A stretch of 64,000 nucleotides of DNA from Sphaerodactylus townsendi (Eukaryota), in the NCBI RefSeq assembly GCF_021028975.2, contig NC_059425.1, forward strand, positions 41,416,001-41,480,000, given 5' to 3'. This document shows, one piece after another, positions 1-53,900 of the stretch. The translations under genes and the position numbers were made by a program. The notes beneath the pieces are model-generated. The model did no database searches and was not told where the DNA came from. It worked only from the letters and a program-made list of their open reading frames with translations. Position 1 is the stretch's first letter; every line of letters begins with the position of its first letter.

Positions 1-1342
1 CCAGGGGAAACTGGTTGGTCAAGGTGTGAGACAAGTTGCTGAACTGGATGGACCATTTATGTTCTTAAACTATAGATTTTTTTTAAAAAAAAGCTATAGG
101 TAATACCTATAGTGAGCCATCTTTTTTCCCCTAGGTAGAGTTATTGTCATATTTGAGCATGCTGATGGATAGGTTCCAGTGACATGTATATCTACTACAG
201 TGAGCTGTCTGCTAATTTTATAGAGGCAATCAAGAGCAAATTGTGTCCTTTATAGAACTGCTTTATGCATGGGGAGCCTGTTTCCTGAATCACAGCCCCA
301 CTTCACTCACATATGTATAGATTATGTGGGTGACTTATTATACCAGAGAACCTTTGTGCAATCATTAGGCGTAAGGGATCTTTTAAAATGACACATGAAT
401 ACTCATTGTTCATTCAAGTATCGCTAGTAGTGTGGAATAGTTCTGAGCTTTTTTAACATTGGCTAAGCTTAAAGTGTAACAAACTAATATACAATTCACT
501 TTTGGAAGGCTGTGATAACTTATGGAACCAAAATTATTACTTGGTAGTGCAAAACCAATTGCTATTTATATCAGCGGTTGAAAACTGCATGCCCACAGAC
601 AATAACTGGATAATTATATATTTTCTTCACAAAGCAAGGGACTCCCTAATAAGTAATAACCACAAAGCATTTTTGTGCTGGGACCGCAGCATCCTGAATG
701 CCACTTTTACATAAGTCTGTATGATACATTAGCAGTTTTCATCTCTTCTATATTGATGAAGAAATTATTCAAGTCTTTCACACACACTTAAGATTTTTCA
801 TGTAATTTACTCCTCTATATCTGTGAGATGCAGAAAGTCAAGGCCAAGGCTTAACCATATTAAGGCTGGCAGGTAGAGAAGTAATGAGATTCCTTGCAAA
901 TGACACCTGAAGATAGCTTATCTGTGATTACTGAAATAACTGGAGAAATTAAGTAATTGCTGTTGGCATTGATGGATCAGCTTGAGTATTTGAATGAATA
1001 CTGGTGTTAGAACTAATGCATAGATTTCACTAGGGCTGGGCTGCTTATGGTTGGTTAGCTGCTTGGTGGTTATAATGACCTTCCTAAAACAGAATGACTA
1101 AAAGCAATAATTGTAAAACATCCTGGTTTTTTTCTGGATTAGACTACAAGGTTTATCTGCTTCTCTTAGTCCATGCATCTTGGAACTTTACAAGCAGAGC
1201 CTGAAGGAGATAGCCATACCTTTGTTTTTGATTCTGTACTCTGGTAGTCAGAAGAGGGCTGTCTCTGAATATGGAAAAAAGACCTGTGATAGATGTATTG
1301 TCAATGTATTACCATGGCAAAAAAAAAAACCCCAGATCTTGG

Positions 1343-1585
1343 TGTGACATACCTCTGAAGATGCCAGCTGCAGATACAGGTGCAAAAACTAGGATCAAAA
1401 ACTACTTGACCACAGACACAGCACAGAAAACCCACAACAGACTGTTGATTCTGGCCATGAAAGCCTTCAACAGTGCCATAGAAGCACATCTCACTGTGAC
1501 ATACTTCTGAAGATGCGGGCAAAACATCTAATAGTTTAAATGACAAGACCATGGCCACACAGCCTGAAAAACCCACAACAGCCAG
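1343..1585 (+). mobile_element. Penelope-like element (PLE) terminal-repeat remnant, two tandem units with degenerate hammerhead-like cores
   Basis: Two direct units ~152 bp apart, starting TGTGACATAC(C/T)TCTGAAGATGC and containing GAAAACCCACAACAG; homologous to the better-preserved copy at 18966-19219. Confidence 0.7.
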
Positions 1586-1769
1586 CTTGTGATAGACCTA
1601 TATCCCATTAATTTATCTAGTTATATTTAGTAGCCATCTTGTGGGGCTGGGCTGGGCCAAGGAGGAAAGGAGGAGAGGTGCGGCCTTGGGGACGATTTTC
1701 CATCTCCACATGACTGAACGGGGTACACCTGGGGAATTTGTCCACACCCTACCCCGTGGAAGCTATGCC

Positions 1770-2420
1770 TGTGCTTTCATGTCACTGCACACCAACTCAA
1801 TGGGGTTCAATTCCACATGGTCGGGAAAGAGGTGAAGCACTTGATGCCCAGCAGCAACAGCCATCTCATCTGTTCAACAGCAAATGAATCTGCTTTTCTC
1901 TTGGCACCAGAAGCAGCAGCAGCTCAGGCTTAATTTGCTCAGGCTCCCAAGAGATCCCCTTTTCCATTAGCCATGTCCTGATGGTTTCCTTTCTGGATGC
2001 AGTCATTGGGATCTTCTCAGACCTCACAGTGATAACATGCATTATCCACCACAATTACACTTTTGGGAGGCAATTTAGGCAGCACCTCGCCAAACCATTT
2101 TTTTTGAAGTGTTCTCCATTCATTTCCTGATGGTAATTGCCTGTAGTTTTGACTGAAACATAAGCAATGCATCCTTCACAAACCTTTTTTCACTCCCACA
2201 GTGACAGCAAATTAAGTGACTGCCCTTGCCAGATGGCTCTTCCAGTCCTGTAGACAACTCCTTAGCCACCTTGACAGTTTGATCTTGCCAACATTTTGAG
2301 ACTGTGTGCCCTTCGTTCACCCATGTCTCAACCAAATATATATATATATTTCTCCCCTCTGAATGAAACTGATTAATCTTTCTCAGATATCAGTGCTCCA
2401 AGCTGTGATTTCAGGGTTGT
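1770..2420 (-). pseudogene. Degenerate IS630/Tc1/mariner transposase catalytic domain, about DD82E (Sailor-like)
   Basis: Minus-strand translation across frameshifts: YLRKINQFHSEGRNI..YL(V)ETWVNEGHT...LSTGLEEPSGKG...GNYHQEMNGEHF..WFGEVLPKLPPKSVIVVDNACYH...EKIP...DEMAVAAGHQVLHLFPDHVELNPIELV. Second D codon at 2044-2046, E codon at 1796-1798, 245 nt between them (~82 codons). Confidence 0.85.
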
Positions 2421-2535
2421 GAGTCTAGATATAATCCTTGTGGCACTGATTGTAGACAAAACCAGTGTCTTTCAAAATGCATTACAGTGTTGTTTGGGAA
2501 ATGCATGGCAGATCCGGGTTGCTGTTTACCTCATT

Positions 2536-2686
2536 GTCCCCTTCCGCACATGCAGAATAATGTGGTTTCAATCCACTTTCACAATTGTTTGCAAGTGCAT
2601 TTTGCTATTCTGCACAGTAAAATCCAGCTGCAAAATGCATTGCAAGTGGATTGAAAGTATATTTATCTGCATGTGCGAAAGGGGCC
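2536..2686. mobile_element. PIF/Harbinger-type MITE (151 bp)
   Basis: TIRs G(T/G)CCCCTT(C/T)CGCACATGCAG, largely palindromic body, 3-bp TSD ATT; inverted sister copy at 25547-25696. Confidence 0.8.
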
Positions 2687-4339
2687 ATTGAGTATCTTTT
2701 TCCGTGATGATGGCTCTTTTCTGAAGAAATATTTATATACAATATCTCTAATTGCACAGCAAGAAAAGCTGTTACACTTTAGATTGCTTTCCTTGGTCCT
2801 TTATTTGCAAAGATGCTTCTTGCCTGACATCCCAATAACTCTTCATGTTGTGTGCCATAGTTTGTTTGCCCTATAGATGAGTGCTGAAGACATGCCAGTT
2901 AACTCTGAGGTTTATGCAGCACATTCCTTGATGCTGAGGGTCAGCTACTCTTGCCTAATGTGTGAATACACATTCAGGGTTTTATTTGCTGAGTGACTTC
3001 TAATTGTCTGTCCTCTGCAATTCAATTTGGAATAACAGTGAAGAGAGTTCTCTGCAGAGTTTGAAAAGCTCGCTCCTGTTCCGTTGGCCATTTTTCAACA
3101 AAAAGGAATGTCTCCATTTGAAAAAGACAAGTCTTACCCTTAGTCATTTGAGGCAATATAAATGCTTTTTTAATCAAACTATCATGTTTAATAGTGCACA
3201 GAATGATGGTTTTGATGAAGGCTGTGCTTTAAAATGATTCCTTAATGCTCATATAGTGGGAGTGGGGAAAAAGTGCCTTTGTACGAAGGCGTGCGCCCCG
3301 GCCAATGCACTCGCTGACCACGGGACACCCAGCTATGCAAATGGCCTGGGGCTACAACAGGTTTATTTATCTCACTTGCAACCTGCTTTACATTTGCTGT
3401 GGGGAAAGGGCCATACTCACCACTTCAAGTTTGAATGGGATTTTGTCCTGCCCTTCCTCTGCACATTATACTGGGATTCTTCTGCCTGGGACTCTACTCC
3501 CTTCTCTGACCCTTATATATTTCCCACTGGTCCTTTCCAAGGTTCAGCACAGAGTGGAGCACTTTCCATCAAGCAGCAAAGGGGCAGCAGGCTGCTGGGC
3601 TGTGCGGCAGGGAGAGGAAGGAAATGGTTTCATCAGTGGCTAAGCTGCTGCCCAGTTGGTTTATATTGTACATGCAACTAGGATACAAAATGTATCCATC
3701 AAACTCAACTGTGAAAAGCAGTCACACAAATACACAATACTGAAAATAAAAAGGCAGGATAGAATTAAATAATAATAAAATAAATCTTGTAGACTGAGAT
3801 GTGCTCATGAACTATTAATGTTAACATGAGTGAATATTTTTGTTCAGCAGTTTGACATTGAATAATAAATTGGCGTTGAACAACAACTTGACAGCATTCT
3901 TGCTGCCTTGGTACATTATATGCTGTAAAGCCCTTTTTTTACCTTTTAGCCTTCTACTTAAGAACAAGTAATAGTGGAGTGCAAACAATGTCTATCATCC
4001 TCCATCCCCAAGTGTTGCCAATTGTGCATTCCTTGAAAATCTGGAATTTTTAGAGACACCCTGATGCCTGGGAAAACACATATCTTATACTATGAGTAAT
4101 GGTCTGAAACAAGGAGTTGCAGAAACTTTATTTTGTCACACAAGTATGAGAGTCTGCACCTGATGAAATTCTATGTTGAATGCAGTTGTTAAAAATACAG
4201 GATCCATTTCCACCTTTGTATCTGGTTATCCAAGTGGTTAGAGACGCTCTTGGTGTTTTTCTGATATTAGAAATTCCAGGCACGTAGTTGGAGCTAAATA
4301 TCAGGAGACCAATGGAGTGGACCTTGCATTAAAAGATCA

Positions 4340-4553
4340 AGCATAGTATAGTGGTTAAGAATGGCAAAGTATAATCTGGAGATCTAGGTTGGATTCCTCA
4401 CTCCTTGGGCTAGACACAGTTCTCTCAGAACCCTCTCAGTTCCACCTACCTCACAAGATGCCTGTTATGGGTTGAGGAAGTGTTAGTGATTGTAAGCTGC
4501 TTTGAGACCCCTTAAGATAGAGAAAAGTGGGGTATAAAAACCAGGTCTTCCTG
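4340..4553 (+). mobile_element. tRNA-derived squamate SINE (Squam3/MIR-like)
   Basis: A-box-like TAGTGGTTAAGA, B-box-like GGTTGGATTCC, core CCACCTACCTCACA, 3' TGTAAGCTGCTTTGAG...GGGGTATAAAAACC. Confidence 0.7.
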
Positions 4554-5329
4554 GGAGAAGAGACAAGACTTTGGAGCAATTTAAGGGTAGGTTAAAAAAA
4601 GGTCTGGTCTCTTGTTTTGTTTTTAAAGGAGGTGAAAGAATTTTGACAAAGCTGTTCGGAAAATCTGTTTTTTTCTCTATGACTGACTTCTGCCCTCAGG
4701 TTTAGCTTCATAATGTGTAGTTGCAACATCCTCTCAGGTCCTTCAGTTCATTTGCACCTTATCCTCTCCCCCCACTCCATACTGTAGATGTGCAATGCTG
4801 AACTGAAAGTGAGATTTGCAAAGATACAAGGGATAGGGAGTTGCAAGTATTTGTGCTTTGTATGCTGAAAAAATAAACTTATTTTTCTTCATCCCAGAGA
4901 CCTGTTTTTATGCCAGGTAGCACTCTGCTTCCTGCTTCTTCAAAACAGTAAAGAAGCCCCAACAGGCAGTTGCATTAATCTCACTTTCCCACACCGAGCA
5001 GGGATATATTAATATGCTTTGTCTGGTAGCACTTGGAGACATCTGAAGATCAGCCTTCTGATGCAGGTTTGCCTAAAGCGAAATTTGAAGCAAATGTCAG
5101 GGCATCTTCTTCTGAGGTGAAACATCTGAGGAATTTTCAGGGAAGACAAAAGAATTTTGATACGACTACCTAAATTTCTCAGTGGGGCTTCATGCATCTC
5201 TAGATGTATTGGCCCAGAGGCAATTTTGGAAATAGGATTCTGGTGCAAAGCGGGTGGGGGGAGAATAGGGATGCCATGAAGAACTCAACTGCCCACTGGG
5301 GCTTCTGTATTGCTCCAAACAAACAGGAA

Positions 5330-13228: not shown

Positions 13229-14239
13229 TTCCATATACTGTATCTTTATTTTTTCCCAAAGAACAGTATTTATTCTTCAGATAGAGGAGACTGATTGTTT
13301 TTCAAGGATTTTCATAACTGGGATATGACTGAAGACACTTATTGATCCTGTGTTAGAATCTGCTATGAGCTGGGAACAACTGGGTGATGTTAAAAGATAA
13401 CCAGTGAAATAATTTGTATTATGATGAATAGAGTAATACAAGTAGTATCTACTGCCAGCATTGCAACTGTGTCAAAAAATATATCAGACTTCTCTGTGTG
13501 TGTGTGTTTTATGTTTGCAGATATCAAAAAGTTGCAAATAGAAAAATTGTTTTCAGGAGTATTATTACTGTTATCTAATTTGGGCTCAAATACTGTAATG
13601 AGATCTGTTCCTAATATTTTCTGTCTTAATTGGTTCTGTTGTTCAAAAACTCAGTTTTAAAAGGAAATTTGTGCTGTGTCTGGGCAGTAAATGGATCCAA
13701 GAGTAATCAGTTTTCTCTGCTGTTTCCCCTTTACAAAAGATAATTACCTCTTGAGTCTTGCATAAGTGCTTCCAATGCAAAAGCCAACTTTCTTGAGTGA
13801 TTATTGCTATCCCATGAGACACAGATGAACCTGGAGCTGGATAGTGATTCCCAAACCTTGAACGTTTGAGCAGCCTGACATCATTTCATGATATGTTTCT
13901 GGGCAGAAACAAGGTTTAGTTTCTTGTGCTTAACTATTTATGTTATGTATCAGTTTTTACTGGGTTCCTAGATCTATCAGATTAAATAGGCAGCAATTTA
14001 CAAGTCCATTCCAGGGCACTAAAAAGGCAGCAAATCATTTTTAAAGAAGTAAATAAACTTTTATAATGTACTGCACTGTCTTTGAGTCTGTATTTCTCCA
14101 GGAGCATAACAATTAATGAATGAACAGAATGAATTATCAAAAGAGAAAGCTATCTGGTAGGGGTAAATGGAGGGGGGACCTTAAATATGGGTTGACAGCA
14201 AGTGGGTGTAAAACTGGCTAGCTAACCCCCCACCCCTCA

Positions 14240-14241
<2 letters not shown>

Positions 14242-14292
<51 letters not shown>

Positions 14293-14312
14293 ACACACAC
14301 ACACACACACAC
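14242..14312. repeat. (CA)n microsatellite
   Basis: Direct reading, one interruption. Confidence 0.95.
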
Positions 14313-15644
14313 CCCATGGGCAGCCGCCTTCCCCCACCACAACCAAAAAAAGGTTTTCCCCCCTCCATGCATTGCCTCTTGTTCCTTCTTACTTAGTGAC
14401 AATATAACTAAGATGCAGCTTAGATAACTAAAAAGGTGTTTTCTTGTTTTCATCCAGGCATTTCCTCCCAATCTAATCTTTTTTTTTTTTTGCTCTAGCT
14501 TCTGTCTTTTACGTTTAGGGCTCCGTTGCTGGCCCCTCTGCCTTGCCCCACCATGCTGGGCTTTTCCCCAATGCGGGATCATGGGGGTTGCTGGCATTGG
14601 AGGGCAGGACTCAACTCTTCTGCTTGCCATGGGGCATCTAAATGCTGTTGGAGGGCCGCTGTGGGCTGCCGGTGCTGGTGGCCATTCCCTCGCCCTCCTC
14701 CAGGTTCAGATAGGTGTGCTTCTGCCAGGCCAGAATGTGGGAGAAAGAGTCCAAAGGGACCATCAGCCCTTACCTTGGACAGGACCTGGGGGAAAGGAGG
14801 AGGGGTTTGGGGGCGATTTCCCACCCCCAAAGTGACTAAATGCTGCCCTGGAACATTTGACCCCATACGTCCCCCTGGGCAGTATGCCCCTGCAGAGAAT
14901 ACAAACAATTTTCTGTCAGTGCTTCTGATATCCACTGTCATTGATTTAAGTCCAAATACAGTATTCAAAGAAAAAGCTGGAGGAATGAGTGACACACATT
15001 TTTCAAGTGGGCAAACTATTCAAATGTATCCTCTCAGACTAGAATGAAATGCTGAAGGTTAAGAGGTTTGAATTGGTGTTCAACTATCTTGTAGATTTGG
15101 GAATCCTGTTGGACTAGCAGTTTGTGCTAATATGCTCTTATTCCTTTCTTTCTGGATTTATATGATTTTTTGTGAAAATTTTTGTTTTACACTGTTTTTT
15201 TAAAAAATGTTGCTAATGTAATCAATTTATTTATTTTATTCCTTTTTATTCCTTCACATAAAAGCAGGGATACAATGGGATTTTTAGGCTATTTTGCATT
15301 ATACATAAGTAATATTTCTATTGAATTTCATTAGAGTAGTCAGAGTGGGAATAGAACTACAATTTTCTCAGTTGGGAAGAAGCCCTGACAGTAACTAAAA
15401 TCTTGAATCAAAACAGTATGTAATGTTTTCTTATGAAACTTCATATTTCTTATATATAGTGTCTAATTTTTATAGCTACAATTTTCACTAGAAAAACAAA
15501 CATCTACTAGCAGTGCTCTAATCATGTTCTGGTTAAATGGATTTCATCTGTGATTGGCTTTCTGGGCATTCTTCAATGTGCCGGTCCTTACTGGTCAACT
15601 TAAATGGCATTTGGAGATCCAGAATCCCAGCTTAGGTCCCTTCC

Positions 15645-50999: not shown

Positions 51000-53900
51000 C
51001 CGGCATCAGGAAGGCTTTGTTAAAAGAAGCAGAAATGGGGAGGGGCATCAATATTTTCTGTATATACCCATTGAGTATGGCCAGAGGGATAGCCAACCCA
51101 TGAAGACTAGATACTGTAGACGATTGCGGAGAAGCGGGAGTCCAGAATAGCATCTATTTCATAGTGCTTGTGGCCATCAATTATAACTGGCCGGGGTGGC
51201 TCCGGAGGGTGCGTGCCAAGCATCTGAAGCAGGAGCCTCAGCAGGCAAGCTGGAATGAAAAGGCTGGGATGAATGTTACTTAATGAGTTAGAGCAGTTCC
51301 AAGCGAGCAGTAACATCATTGATCACCTTTGTAATCCGAAAAGGGCCCACAAATTTCTTGCCAAGTTTTGAATATTTGTGCACGTCTCTAAGGTTTTAGT
51401 GGACAAATAGACCCATACCCAACCGCATAGGGAAGTCTGAAGCGGCAGCTGTCCGCCTGACAACTTTGTGATTCTTGGGCCTGCTGTAAGGTAGACTGCA
51501 CTGTTTCCAACCCTATTGTGAGATCCATTGTTTGAATTCTGGAGGCTGCAGTACCTCTGCGGGCAGCTGGGGCTGTGATTGGAAAGACCGATGAAACAAT
51601 CTCGAGAGCGGGGTCTTTTAGGTGCTACTATGAATAACGTTGTTATCACATACTCTGCAAAAGAGGTAAATCGCGCAATTGTCCACAATGTGCATTAGGT
51701 ATAACAAGCAATAAATACTGTTCTAACGTTCTGTTAGATCCCGTTCCTGATTGGCCGTCACTTTGAGCGTGGTAGAGGCGGCGACAGCTGGGTGGTTCCC
51801 AACAGCTCCAGGAAAGCCTTCAAAGGCTTTAGATATGAATTGGGGACGCTGATTCCGGATACCACCAATACGGAAGGTGTGAAGCGATAGATATGTTGGA
51901 TAAACAACTGGAGCCAGTTTAAGGTGCCCGGCGGGATGGTGGTGCAAGGAATGAAATAAGCCTGTTTGAAAAAAAGATCCACCACCACCCATAAAACGGT
52001 GTTCCGATGGCTTTCCACGGCAAATCATTATAAAATCCATGGAAATGACCTGCCAGAGTCCGAGATGCAACTGGGAGGGGTTTTAATAACCCATGCGGCT
52101 TCCAGTTATCGACTTGGCTTCCGCACAGGCGGAACACTTGCTGATGCTCGTTTCCAATGTCTTTAGCATGGAAGCGCCACCAGAACTGTCGGCCAGACCC
52201 AGATGCAACGTTTTGAAAACCCAGTGCCAACCTGGCCGGGCATCGCGACACATTCGAGAACCTGCTTCCGGAGGAGAGGAGGGCGATACCAACACCCTCC
52301 CATTTCAAACACCACCCTCTAAAATGCAGTTGTGAATCTCCTTCCTCCGCCCGACAGTTAGCGGAGCCCGCCTCTGAATCCCCGGAGGAAGGGAAGGCGA
52401 TATTAGGATGAATTACGGTGGGGAGGAACGCCGTAGTTTGTGATTGGGTGACCGCTAATCCCAGCTGGGAGGGAGAGCGATGCGTGGGATGTCTCGTATG
52501 TCTTCCCCAGGGGAGGCGAGACAAGCGCATCAGCCAGTTTATTGCTTTACGGGGAAGAAATGGACTGTGAAAGAGAACCTGGAGAAAAAATCATTGCGCC
52601 AATTGTTTTGCAGACATTTTGAGTGGAGTGGATAGGGGCAACCAGATTTTTGTGATCTGACCAGACCTGGAAAGGGTGTTTGGCTCCTTCCAGCCAATGG
52701 CGTAAACACTCAATGCAGCTTTGATAACTGCGGTCTCCTTATCCCCACAGTCCAATTTAGTTCAGCCCCAGAAAACTTTTTTGGACAAGTAAGCACCTGG
52801 TACCAATTTGTTATTTTATTTTTTCTGCAAGAGGGGCAGCCTAGCGCTTTATCGAAACATCCACATGCGATGAAAGGAAGATCTGGGTCTGGGTTACTTA
52901 AATTGGTTCCGTAGTAAAAGCTGTTTTTAGTTGCTGGAATGCTGACTAGCATTCTTGAGACCAGAAGAGGAGCTCGGGTTTAAATACTCTGAGTCTTTGC
53001 CTTTGTACATAAAGAGATCGGTGGTATTGAGCAATTTCAACCAAATCGGGGAATAAAGTCACAGTAGAAATTGGCAAAGCCTAGGAAGGATTGCAGTTCC
53101 TTCCTGTTGGTGGGGGCAGGCCATTCTCAGTCACAAGCCTTTATTGGCATAAAATAAACATACAAAATCAGCATACAAAATTTGCCCATTATTGCTCACA
53201 ATTATAGACACTGGTACTAAAATACTAAATACTAAAATATATACATGGTCCTTCTGTAACTATAGGACATTCCTTCAGCTAAGTTAACTCACTTAAACGT
53301 CATCGGATACTGACAGAAGCCTAGGAAGGATTGCAGTTCCTAGTTGAATGGTTGCAGTTCCTAGTTGAATGGCAGGCCATTCAATCACTGCGGCTATTTT
53401 AGCTGGGTCCATTTCCAAACCCTCATGAGAGATTCGATACCCCAGATAGTCTATGGAGGAGCGATGGAAACAGCATTTTGACAACTTGACAAAGAGGGAG
53501 TTATCTAGTAGACGTTGTAAAGACTTCATTACTAGTTTCTCATGCTCCTCAATGGTTTGTGTGCGGTAAATTAATACATCATCTAAATATACGACCACCT
53601 TTATATAACAGATCTTGTAAAACTTCGTTGATAAAGGGCCATGAAGGCTCCCTGGGGCTCCAGCTAATCCGAATGGCATTATTAAATATTCATATTGTCC
53701 AAACTTTGTGAAAGCTGTCAAGTGTTGCGTGGCCTTCCATAATCTGGACTCTATAATAAACCTCTCTCAAGTCCAGCTTGGTAAAGATTAATGCCCAATG
53801 CATCCAAGAGGTCTTTAATTAAGGGGCAAAGGATACTTGTTTGGATATGGACACAGCATTCAATCCGATAAATCAGTACAAAGTCTTAACAGACCATCCT

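Follow-up and report, generated by a model that had tools for sequence, protein, structure and literature searches.

A probable dead copy of a Sailor (DD82E) transposon in the genome of the gecko Sphaerodactylus townsendi

Introduction

As a short stretch of the Sphaerodactylus townsendi genome reads on its minus strand as a broken transposase, we were interested whether it is the remains of a Sailor transposon, whether any of it could still work, and how such an element came to lie in a vertebrate. Sailor is defined by a DD82E catalytic core (range DD78E–DD111E) and forms a separate clade beside Tc1/mariner (Shi et al., 2021; PMC8533490). The elements make TATA target duplications and carry inverted repeats mostly starting with GT or CC, and the survey that defined them, the only one of the group, recorded hosts in six kingdoms, with none among the vertebrates (PMC8533490). 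A sequence-only reading of the 64-kb window, by which we mean the whole stretch of DNA analysed here (free of N), had proposed a Sailor fossil at 1770–2420, possibly left by an unreported vertebrate invasion that plausibly started from an arthropod.

Results

A single broken transposase on the minus strand

The minus strand from 3091 to 1766 reads as one transposase split into seven pieces with five frame changes, and this Sailor-type (DD82E) pseudogene was delimited by tblastn, by stitching of the pieces and by a profile of C-terminal tails. Codon reading on that strand recovered all the motifs that had been claimed ((D>V)ETW, DNACYH and LNPIE) together with the frameshifts. LVETWV lies at 2335–2318, where the first catalytic aspartate site (2330–2332) is GTT, a valine, giving LVETW and not LDETW; VVDNACYH lies at 2052–2029 with the second catalytic aspartate as GAT at 2044–2046; and LNPIE lies at 1810–1796 with the catalytic glutamate as GAG at 1796–1798. 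Exactly 245 nt (2043–1799) were counted between the codons of the second D and the E, the distance given before, which is 82 codons minus one base.

XP_048361522.1 (LOC125437708, P0001), an intact 480-aa 'uncharacterized protein' of S. townsendi in RefSeq, was compared with the window by tblastn, and its residues 1–401 aligned colinearly to 3091..1772 in separate pieces with E-values of 1e-40, 5e-29 and 5e-28. The homology is thus about twice as long as the 1770–2420 first proposed, an interval that spans the catalytic core only. A phmmer search of 1.84 billion representative proteins with an 89-aa piece of the relic led to 479 matches at E<=0.001, the best being XP_048361522.1 (E 9e-25, 69% identity), and judged by these scores the homology to a transposase is far above chance. 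A word-index protein search with the same piece gave no candidate among proteins of 49–156 aa, the length range covered. The transposase occurs only once within the window.

The N-terminal DNA-binding part (2687–3091, minus strand; residues 1–143) is 56% identical to XP_048361522.1 over 143 residues by tblastn (E 1e-40), with four in-frame stops and the start codon preserved at 3091–3089. It is followed by the linker and second helix-turn-helix region (2398–2535, minus strand), which contains two in-frame stops and in which NEVNSNPDLPCISQTTL...PEITAW aligns with residues 143–189 of XP_048361522.1.

Damage to the copy

The stitched reading contains 8 in-frame stops and 5 frameshifts relative to XP_048361522.1, and the tblastn alignment adds a five-residue deletion. 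The valine at the first catalytic position replaces an aspartate that is invariant in 30 relatives and present in 5/5 intact gecko paralogs. The reading frame is further interrupted at 2536–2686, after residue 143 and before residue 144, by an inserted MITE-like hairpin repeat of 151 nt, recognised from its inverted arms (2530–2606 and 2616–2692, 77 nt each, 75% complementary) and from the alignment to XP_048361522.1, which skips from 2687 to 2535 across it. Summed contig depth over the repeat reaches the millions, and it is foreign to the transposon. The hairpin sequence at 2530–2692 ranks among the commonest repeats of this genome.

The C-terminal part of about 79 residues left no trace below 1772, and a profile built from 126 C-terminal tails matched only as far as LNPIELVCSDMKA. 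A motif 'FSHVEMEN', considered as a possible remnant, was dropped after the tail profile had matched nothing below 1772. Instead of the intact reading frame under constraint that marks a domesticated gene, the relic shows stops, frameshifts, an insertion, a truncation and a long end branch (see below). It is unable to move or to make protein.

Element ends and neighbouring repeats

Upstream of the start codon, a leader at 3092–3255 (minus strand) with a candidate end beside TATA at 3252–3255 was recognised from a contig of another copy, which is colinear with the window from 2993 to 3253 and departs beyond. Depth is about 150-fold higher over 3139–3472, where a commoner repeat overlaps the Sailor leader; this repeat could have come from an element of another kind, or it could be a short non-autonomous derivative of the Sailor terminus. 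On the other side the copy has lost its 3' end, and no inverted partner of 3092–3560 was found within 1–1800, where alignment scores equalled those of shuffled sequence. With the 3' end gone, neither terminal inverted repeats nor a target duplication could be confirmed, and arrival of the window copy by transposition is therefore inferred.

Several other features were recorded in the window. Very high-copy SINE-like repeats with depths of 1e5–1e6 times contig units lie at 1302–1635 and 4308–4641; the former consists of two similar units and is situated about 130 nt lower in coordinate than the 3' truncation of the relic. A long GT/CA microsatellite at 14181–14630 produces CVCV runs in a minus-strand ORF translation, and the reverse-transcriptase motif YLDDVLIY marks a 142-aa open frame at 53293–53721 (minus strand) as a probable piece of an LTR retroelement.

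Copy number and age

The stretch is present in five sequencing runs from three organisms, and contigs from four of these runs were aligned on window positions 300–5300 at 80% likeness. Single-copy contigs from all three organisms span the locus with 0–1% differences, some of them crossing the truncated end near 1766. Summed depth over the transposase is 7–15 times that of the flanks. Copy number had been put forward as a check on the fossil, and beyond this locus we found at least 9–21 related contigs with a different letter at single positions of the transposase, a loose proxy in which alleles may count twice. Pieces of other copies among the contigs listed differ from the window copy by 14–17%. 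By this loose estimate the family is low-copy, with roughly 10–20 copies, and old. Squamate neutral rates are commonly assumed to be 1–2e-9 per site per year, and at such rates the roughly 8% of change on each lineage would have taken tens of millions of years. The family is an old resident of the gecko genome and not a recent import.

Assignment to Sailor

In a decayed copy a long spacer could be due to insertions, but the intact relatives have it too. The D–E spacer is exactly 82 residues in XP_048361522.1, LOC125428705, LOC125434339 and seven non-gecko relatives, among them spider, tick and aphid proteins. Comparison by eye with the catalytic-domain alignment in Data S2 of PMC8533490 showed the same block order (YLDETW / PSGKG / DYHxEMN / VIVMDNASYH / PPYHCELNPIE) and further common blocks (PSGKG..RLI, DYHxEMN..F..WF, K.EL and GH.VLRLPPYHCELNPIE). 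The first D is followed by an additional GLSTGLK-PSGKG block, as in the tick and aphid subtype of that alignment. The named relatives of XP_048361522.1, among the best 120 of 669 matches at E<=1e-10, come from Araneus, Ixodes, Rhipicephalus, Amblyomma, aphids and beetles. Three species were looked up in the tables of the survey, and Ixodes scapularis, Acyrthosiphon pisum and Araneus ventricosus are all catalogued there as Sailor hosts, the Araneus entry as DD84E and the other two as DD82E, the tick and aphid entries with TATA duplications (PMC8533490). Exact 14- and 15-residue strings of the tick, aphid and beetle relatives were not found in the files of PMC8533490, so that it is the layout, the spacing and the lists of hosts that tie these proteins to Sailor. 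On this basis, the assignment to Sailor is well supported, and the DD82E identity first assigned to the locus holds.

XP_048361522.1 (34.7 bits), LOC125428705 (43.8) and LOC125445060 (44.3) score above the gathering cut-off of Pfam DDE_3 (PF13358; 28.6 bits). When six pieces of the relic were searched separately against Pfam, there was a single weak DDE_3 match (36-aa piece, 12.8 bits, E 0.11), which can be explained by the breakage of the copy into short pieces. XP_048361522.1 alone matched no PDB transposase at E<=1 in a single-sequence search of solved structures, and a profile of 30 Sailor proteins reached only the catalytic domain of Sleeping Beauty SB100X (PDB 5cr4; E 7e-4), around the PxxxxLNPIE region.

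Gecko paralogs and phylogeny

Besides XP_048361522.1, four further S. townsendi paralogs are found in RefSeq (LOC125428705, LOC125445060, LOC125438901 and LOC125434339; P0161–P0164). They are 72–83% identical to it, and all non-gecko matches are <=48–54% identical, both among the best 120 of 669 matches at E<=1e-10; by local alignment with the relatives collected, the best non-gecko identity is <=57–58%. The five paralogs sit on five different chromosome-size contigs, and all five retain the catalytic D, D and E. In the gene model of LOC125428705 a KRAB box at residues 8–48 (E 2.9e-18) precedes the Sailor transposase, which begins near residue 103; if the model is right, this gene would encode a KRAB-transposase fusion.

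Against each of the five gecko paralogs the stitched relic, with X at every break, shows an identity of 60–63%, vs 38–42% against arthropod proteins. Two maximum-likelihood trees (83 and 51 rows; support as SH-aLRT from quick searches) both united the relic and the five paralogs in a six-member clade with 100% support. Both trees were built from Sailor-like proteins and bear on kinship within that set, not on its separation from Tc1/mariner, pogo, Gambol, Zator or IS630. The clade has a stem of 0.63–0.72 changes per site and internal branches of 0.018–0.031, and it is star-like. Neither tree gave it a supported sister or a close arthropod donor; the nearest rows are proteins without a species label, and ticks and spiders are close by without support. 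The end branch of the relic measures 0.35–0.41 in the two trees vs 0.075–0.25 for the intact paralogs. If all six arose together, the intact paralogs have changed at 0.2–0.6 of the pseudogene rate, a rough ratio, as mis-joined frames would lengthen the pseudogene branch.

Discussion

From the colinear pieces, the 82-residue spacer of the relatives, the shared leader and the position in the gecko clade, the minus-strand segment 1766–3091, together with a leader to at least 3253, is very probably a dead Sailor (DD82E) element, within the IS630/Tc1/mariner group, from a small and old gecko family. As expected from the family, a living element would encode a transposase that binds DNA through paired helix-turn-helix domains and cuts it with an RNase-H-like core carrying the D,D,E triad. 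Such an enzyme would bind the terminal inverted repeats, excise the element and insert it into a TA-rich (TATA) target. A single ancient entry into, or origin in, the gecko lineage was probably followed by one short burst of copies, after which the window copy decayed neutrally, collecting its stops and frameshifts and losing the first D. The hairpin insertion and the 3' truncation belong to the same decay. In short, the window copy is unusual in its kind but, as a dead transposon, ordinary.

Three other readings were weighed against a dead Sailor copy. That the relic is an ordinary Tc1/mariner (DD34E/D) copy, its long spacer an artefact of insertions acquired during decay, might be suggested by pieces that barely reach DDE_3 and by Sleeping Beauty as the nearest solved structure; however, the identical 82-residue spacer of the intact relatives contradicts a DD34E/D identity, which was rejected, and neither the lack of a PDB match by sequence nor the modest profile score to SB100X speaks for it, leaving this reading scarcely credible. 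The relic could also be the pseudogene of a host gene that had earlier been domesticated from Sailor, made by duplication or retroposition and placed here without direct insertion of a transposon. Such an origin would account for the absence of inverted repeats at the locus, but the copy follows the whole frame from the start codon, the leader upstream of it is common to another copy up to 3253, and the related contigs (9–21) outnumber the intact genes (five). As the star-like tree fits a transposition burst and all five paralogs keep the catalytic triad, we regard a pseudogene of a host gene as unlikely.

How the family reached the gecko is a separate matter. Only S. townsendi represents the vertebrates among the named matches, and every other named match is an arthropod (best 120 of 669, E<=1e-10); since this is combined with the patchy distribution of Sailor, horizontal transfer into this gecko lineage is the simplest reading. 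The long stem and the lack of a close donor make the event ancient. An arthropod source, as first supposed, is plausible and agrees with the named relatives, but it is not demonstrated by a stem of this length, a clade without a supported sister and non-gecko identities no higher than those given above. The same long stem and missing donor would be expected if the family had been inherited vertically from Sailor elements long present in vertebrates, perhaps those behind chordate C21orf140/FAM243A, and had been lost elsewhere. Pfam 38 indeed records a 'C21orf140-like' family on Sailor proteins of the gecko and of arthropods, there is a C21orf140 cluster in chordates, and C21ORF140 has been given as a putative DDE endonuclease (PMC11377751). 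Against vertical descent, the named proteins come from one gecko species and otherwise from arthropods, many independent losses would be required, and the gecko proteins are far closer to arthropod clusters (feature score 0.98) than to the C21orf140 cluster (0.80). We consider vertical descent rather improbable, if less so than an origin from a host gene, and keep ancient horizontal entry as the simpler account.

In precomputed Pfam lists, the gecko proteins have PF27940 ('C21orf140-like', Pfam 38.1), as do most of the Sailor transposases from arthropods, and PF27940 is the sole family of a 65-member chordate cluster, 'C21orf140 homolog' (274 aa). Human C21ORF140/FAM243A was listed in 2024 as a putative DDE endonuclease (PMC11377751). 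Based on these Pfam family records, C21orf140/FAM243A may be a much older Sailor-derived chordate gene, and the link suggests that a human gene of uncharacterised role may derive from Sailor. A tentative and somewhat speculative extension is that vertebrates met Sailor at least twice, in an ancient event that led to chordate C21orf140/FAM243A and in a later sphaerodactylid burst of 10–20 copies, five of which were kept. The later entry might have come via ticks or arthropod prey, and one of the five kept copies would have been fused to a KRAB box. If this is true, the fossil is a neutral remnant of the burst and lets selection on the kept copies be measured.

No report of a vertebrate Sailor was found in the literature searched, including work after PMC8533490, and in this sense the invasion can still be called unreported; its proteins, however, are already in RefSeq as five intact but uncharacterised paralogs. 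A dispersed copy in decay speaks most plainly for past Sailor movement in a vertebrate germ line, and it adds one more superfamily to those that entered tetrapods. For the five intact paralogs the relic also offers a neutral reference, and their end branches, 2–5 times shorter than its own, fit retention by selection.

Among known systems, the S. townsendi RefSeq paralogs are colinear with the relic from the start codon and join it in one fully supported clade, but they are intact and keep D/D/E, whereas the window copy is a pseudogene. C21orf140/FAM243A has PF27940 in common with the gecko and arthropod Sailor proteins, but is short (about 250–274 aa), has no DDE_3 record in its cluster and shows a feature similarity of only 0.80 to XP_048361522.1. 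Tc1/mariner DD34E elements such as Sleeping Beauty (5cr4) belong to the same broad group, with Pfam DDE_3 common to all, but the DD34E/DD34D spacer has 34 residues vs 82 in the gecko family. Sailor of the tick/aphid subtype (Ar-Ixoric, Ar-Myzper) has the same 82-residue spacer, the same block order and the extra GLSTGLK-PSGKG block; relative to the published Sailor elements (PMC8533490), the host here is a vertebrate, and the window copy is dead and 3'-truncated.
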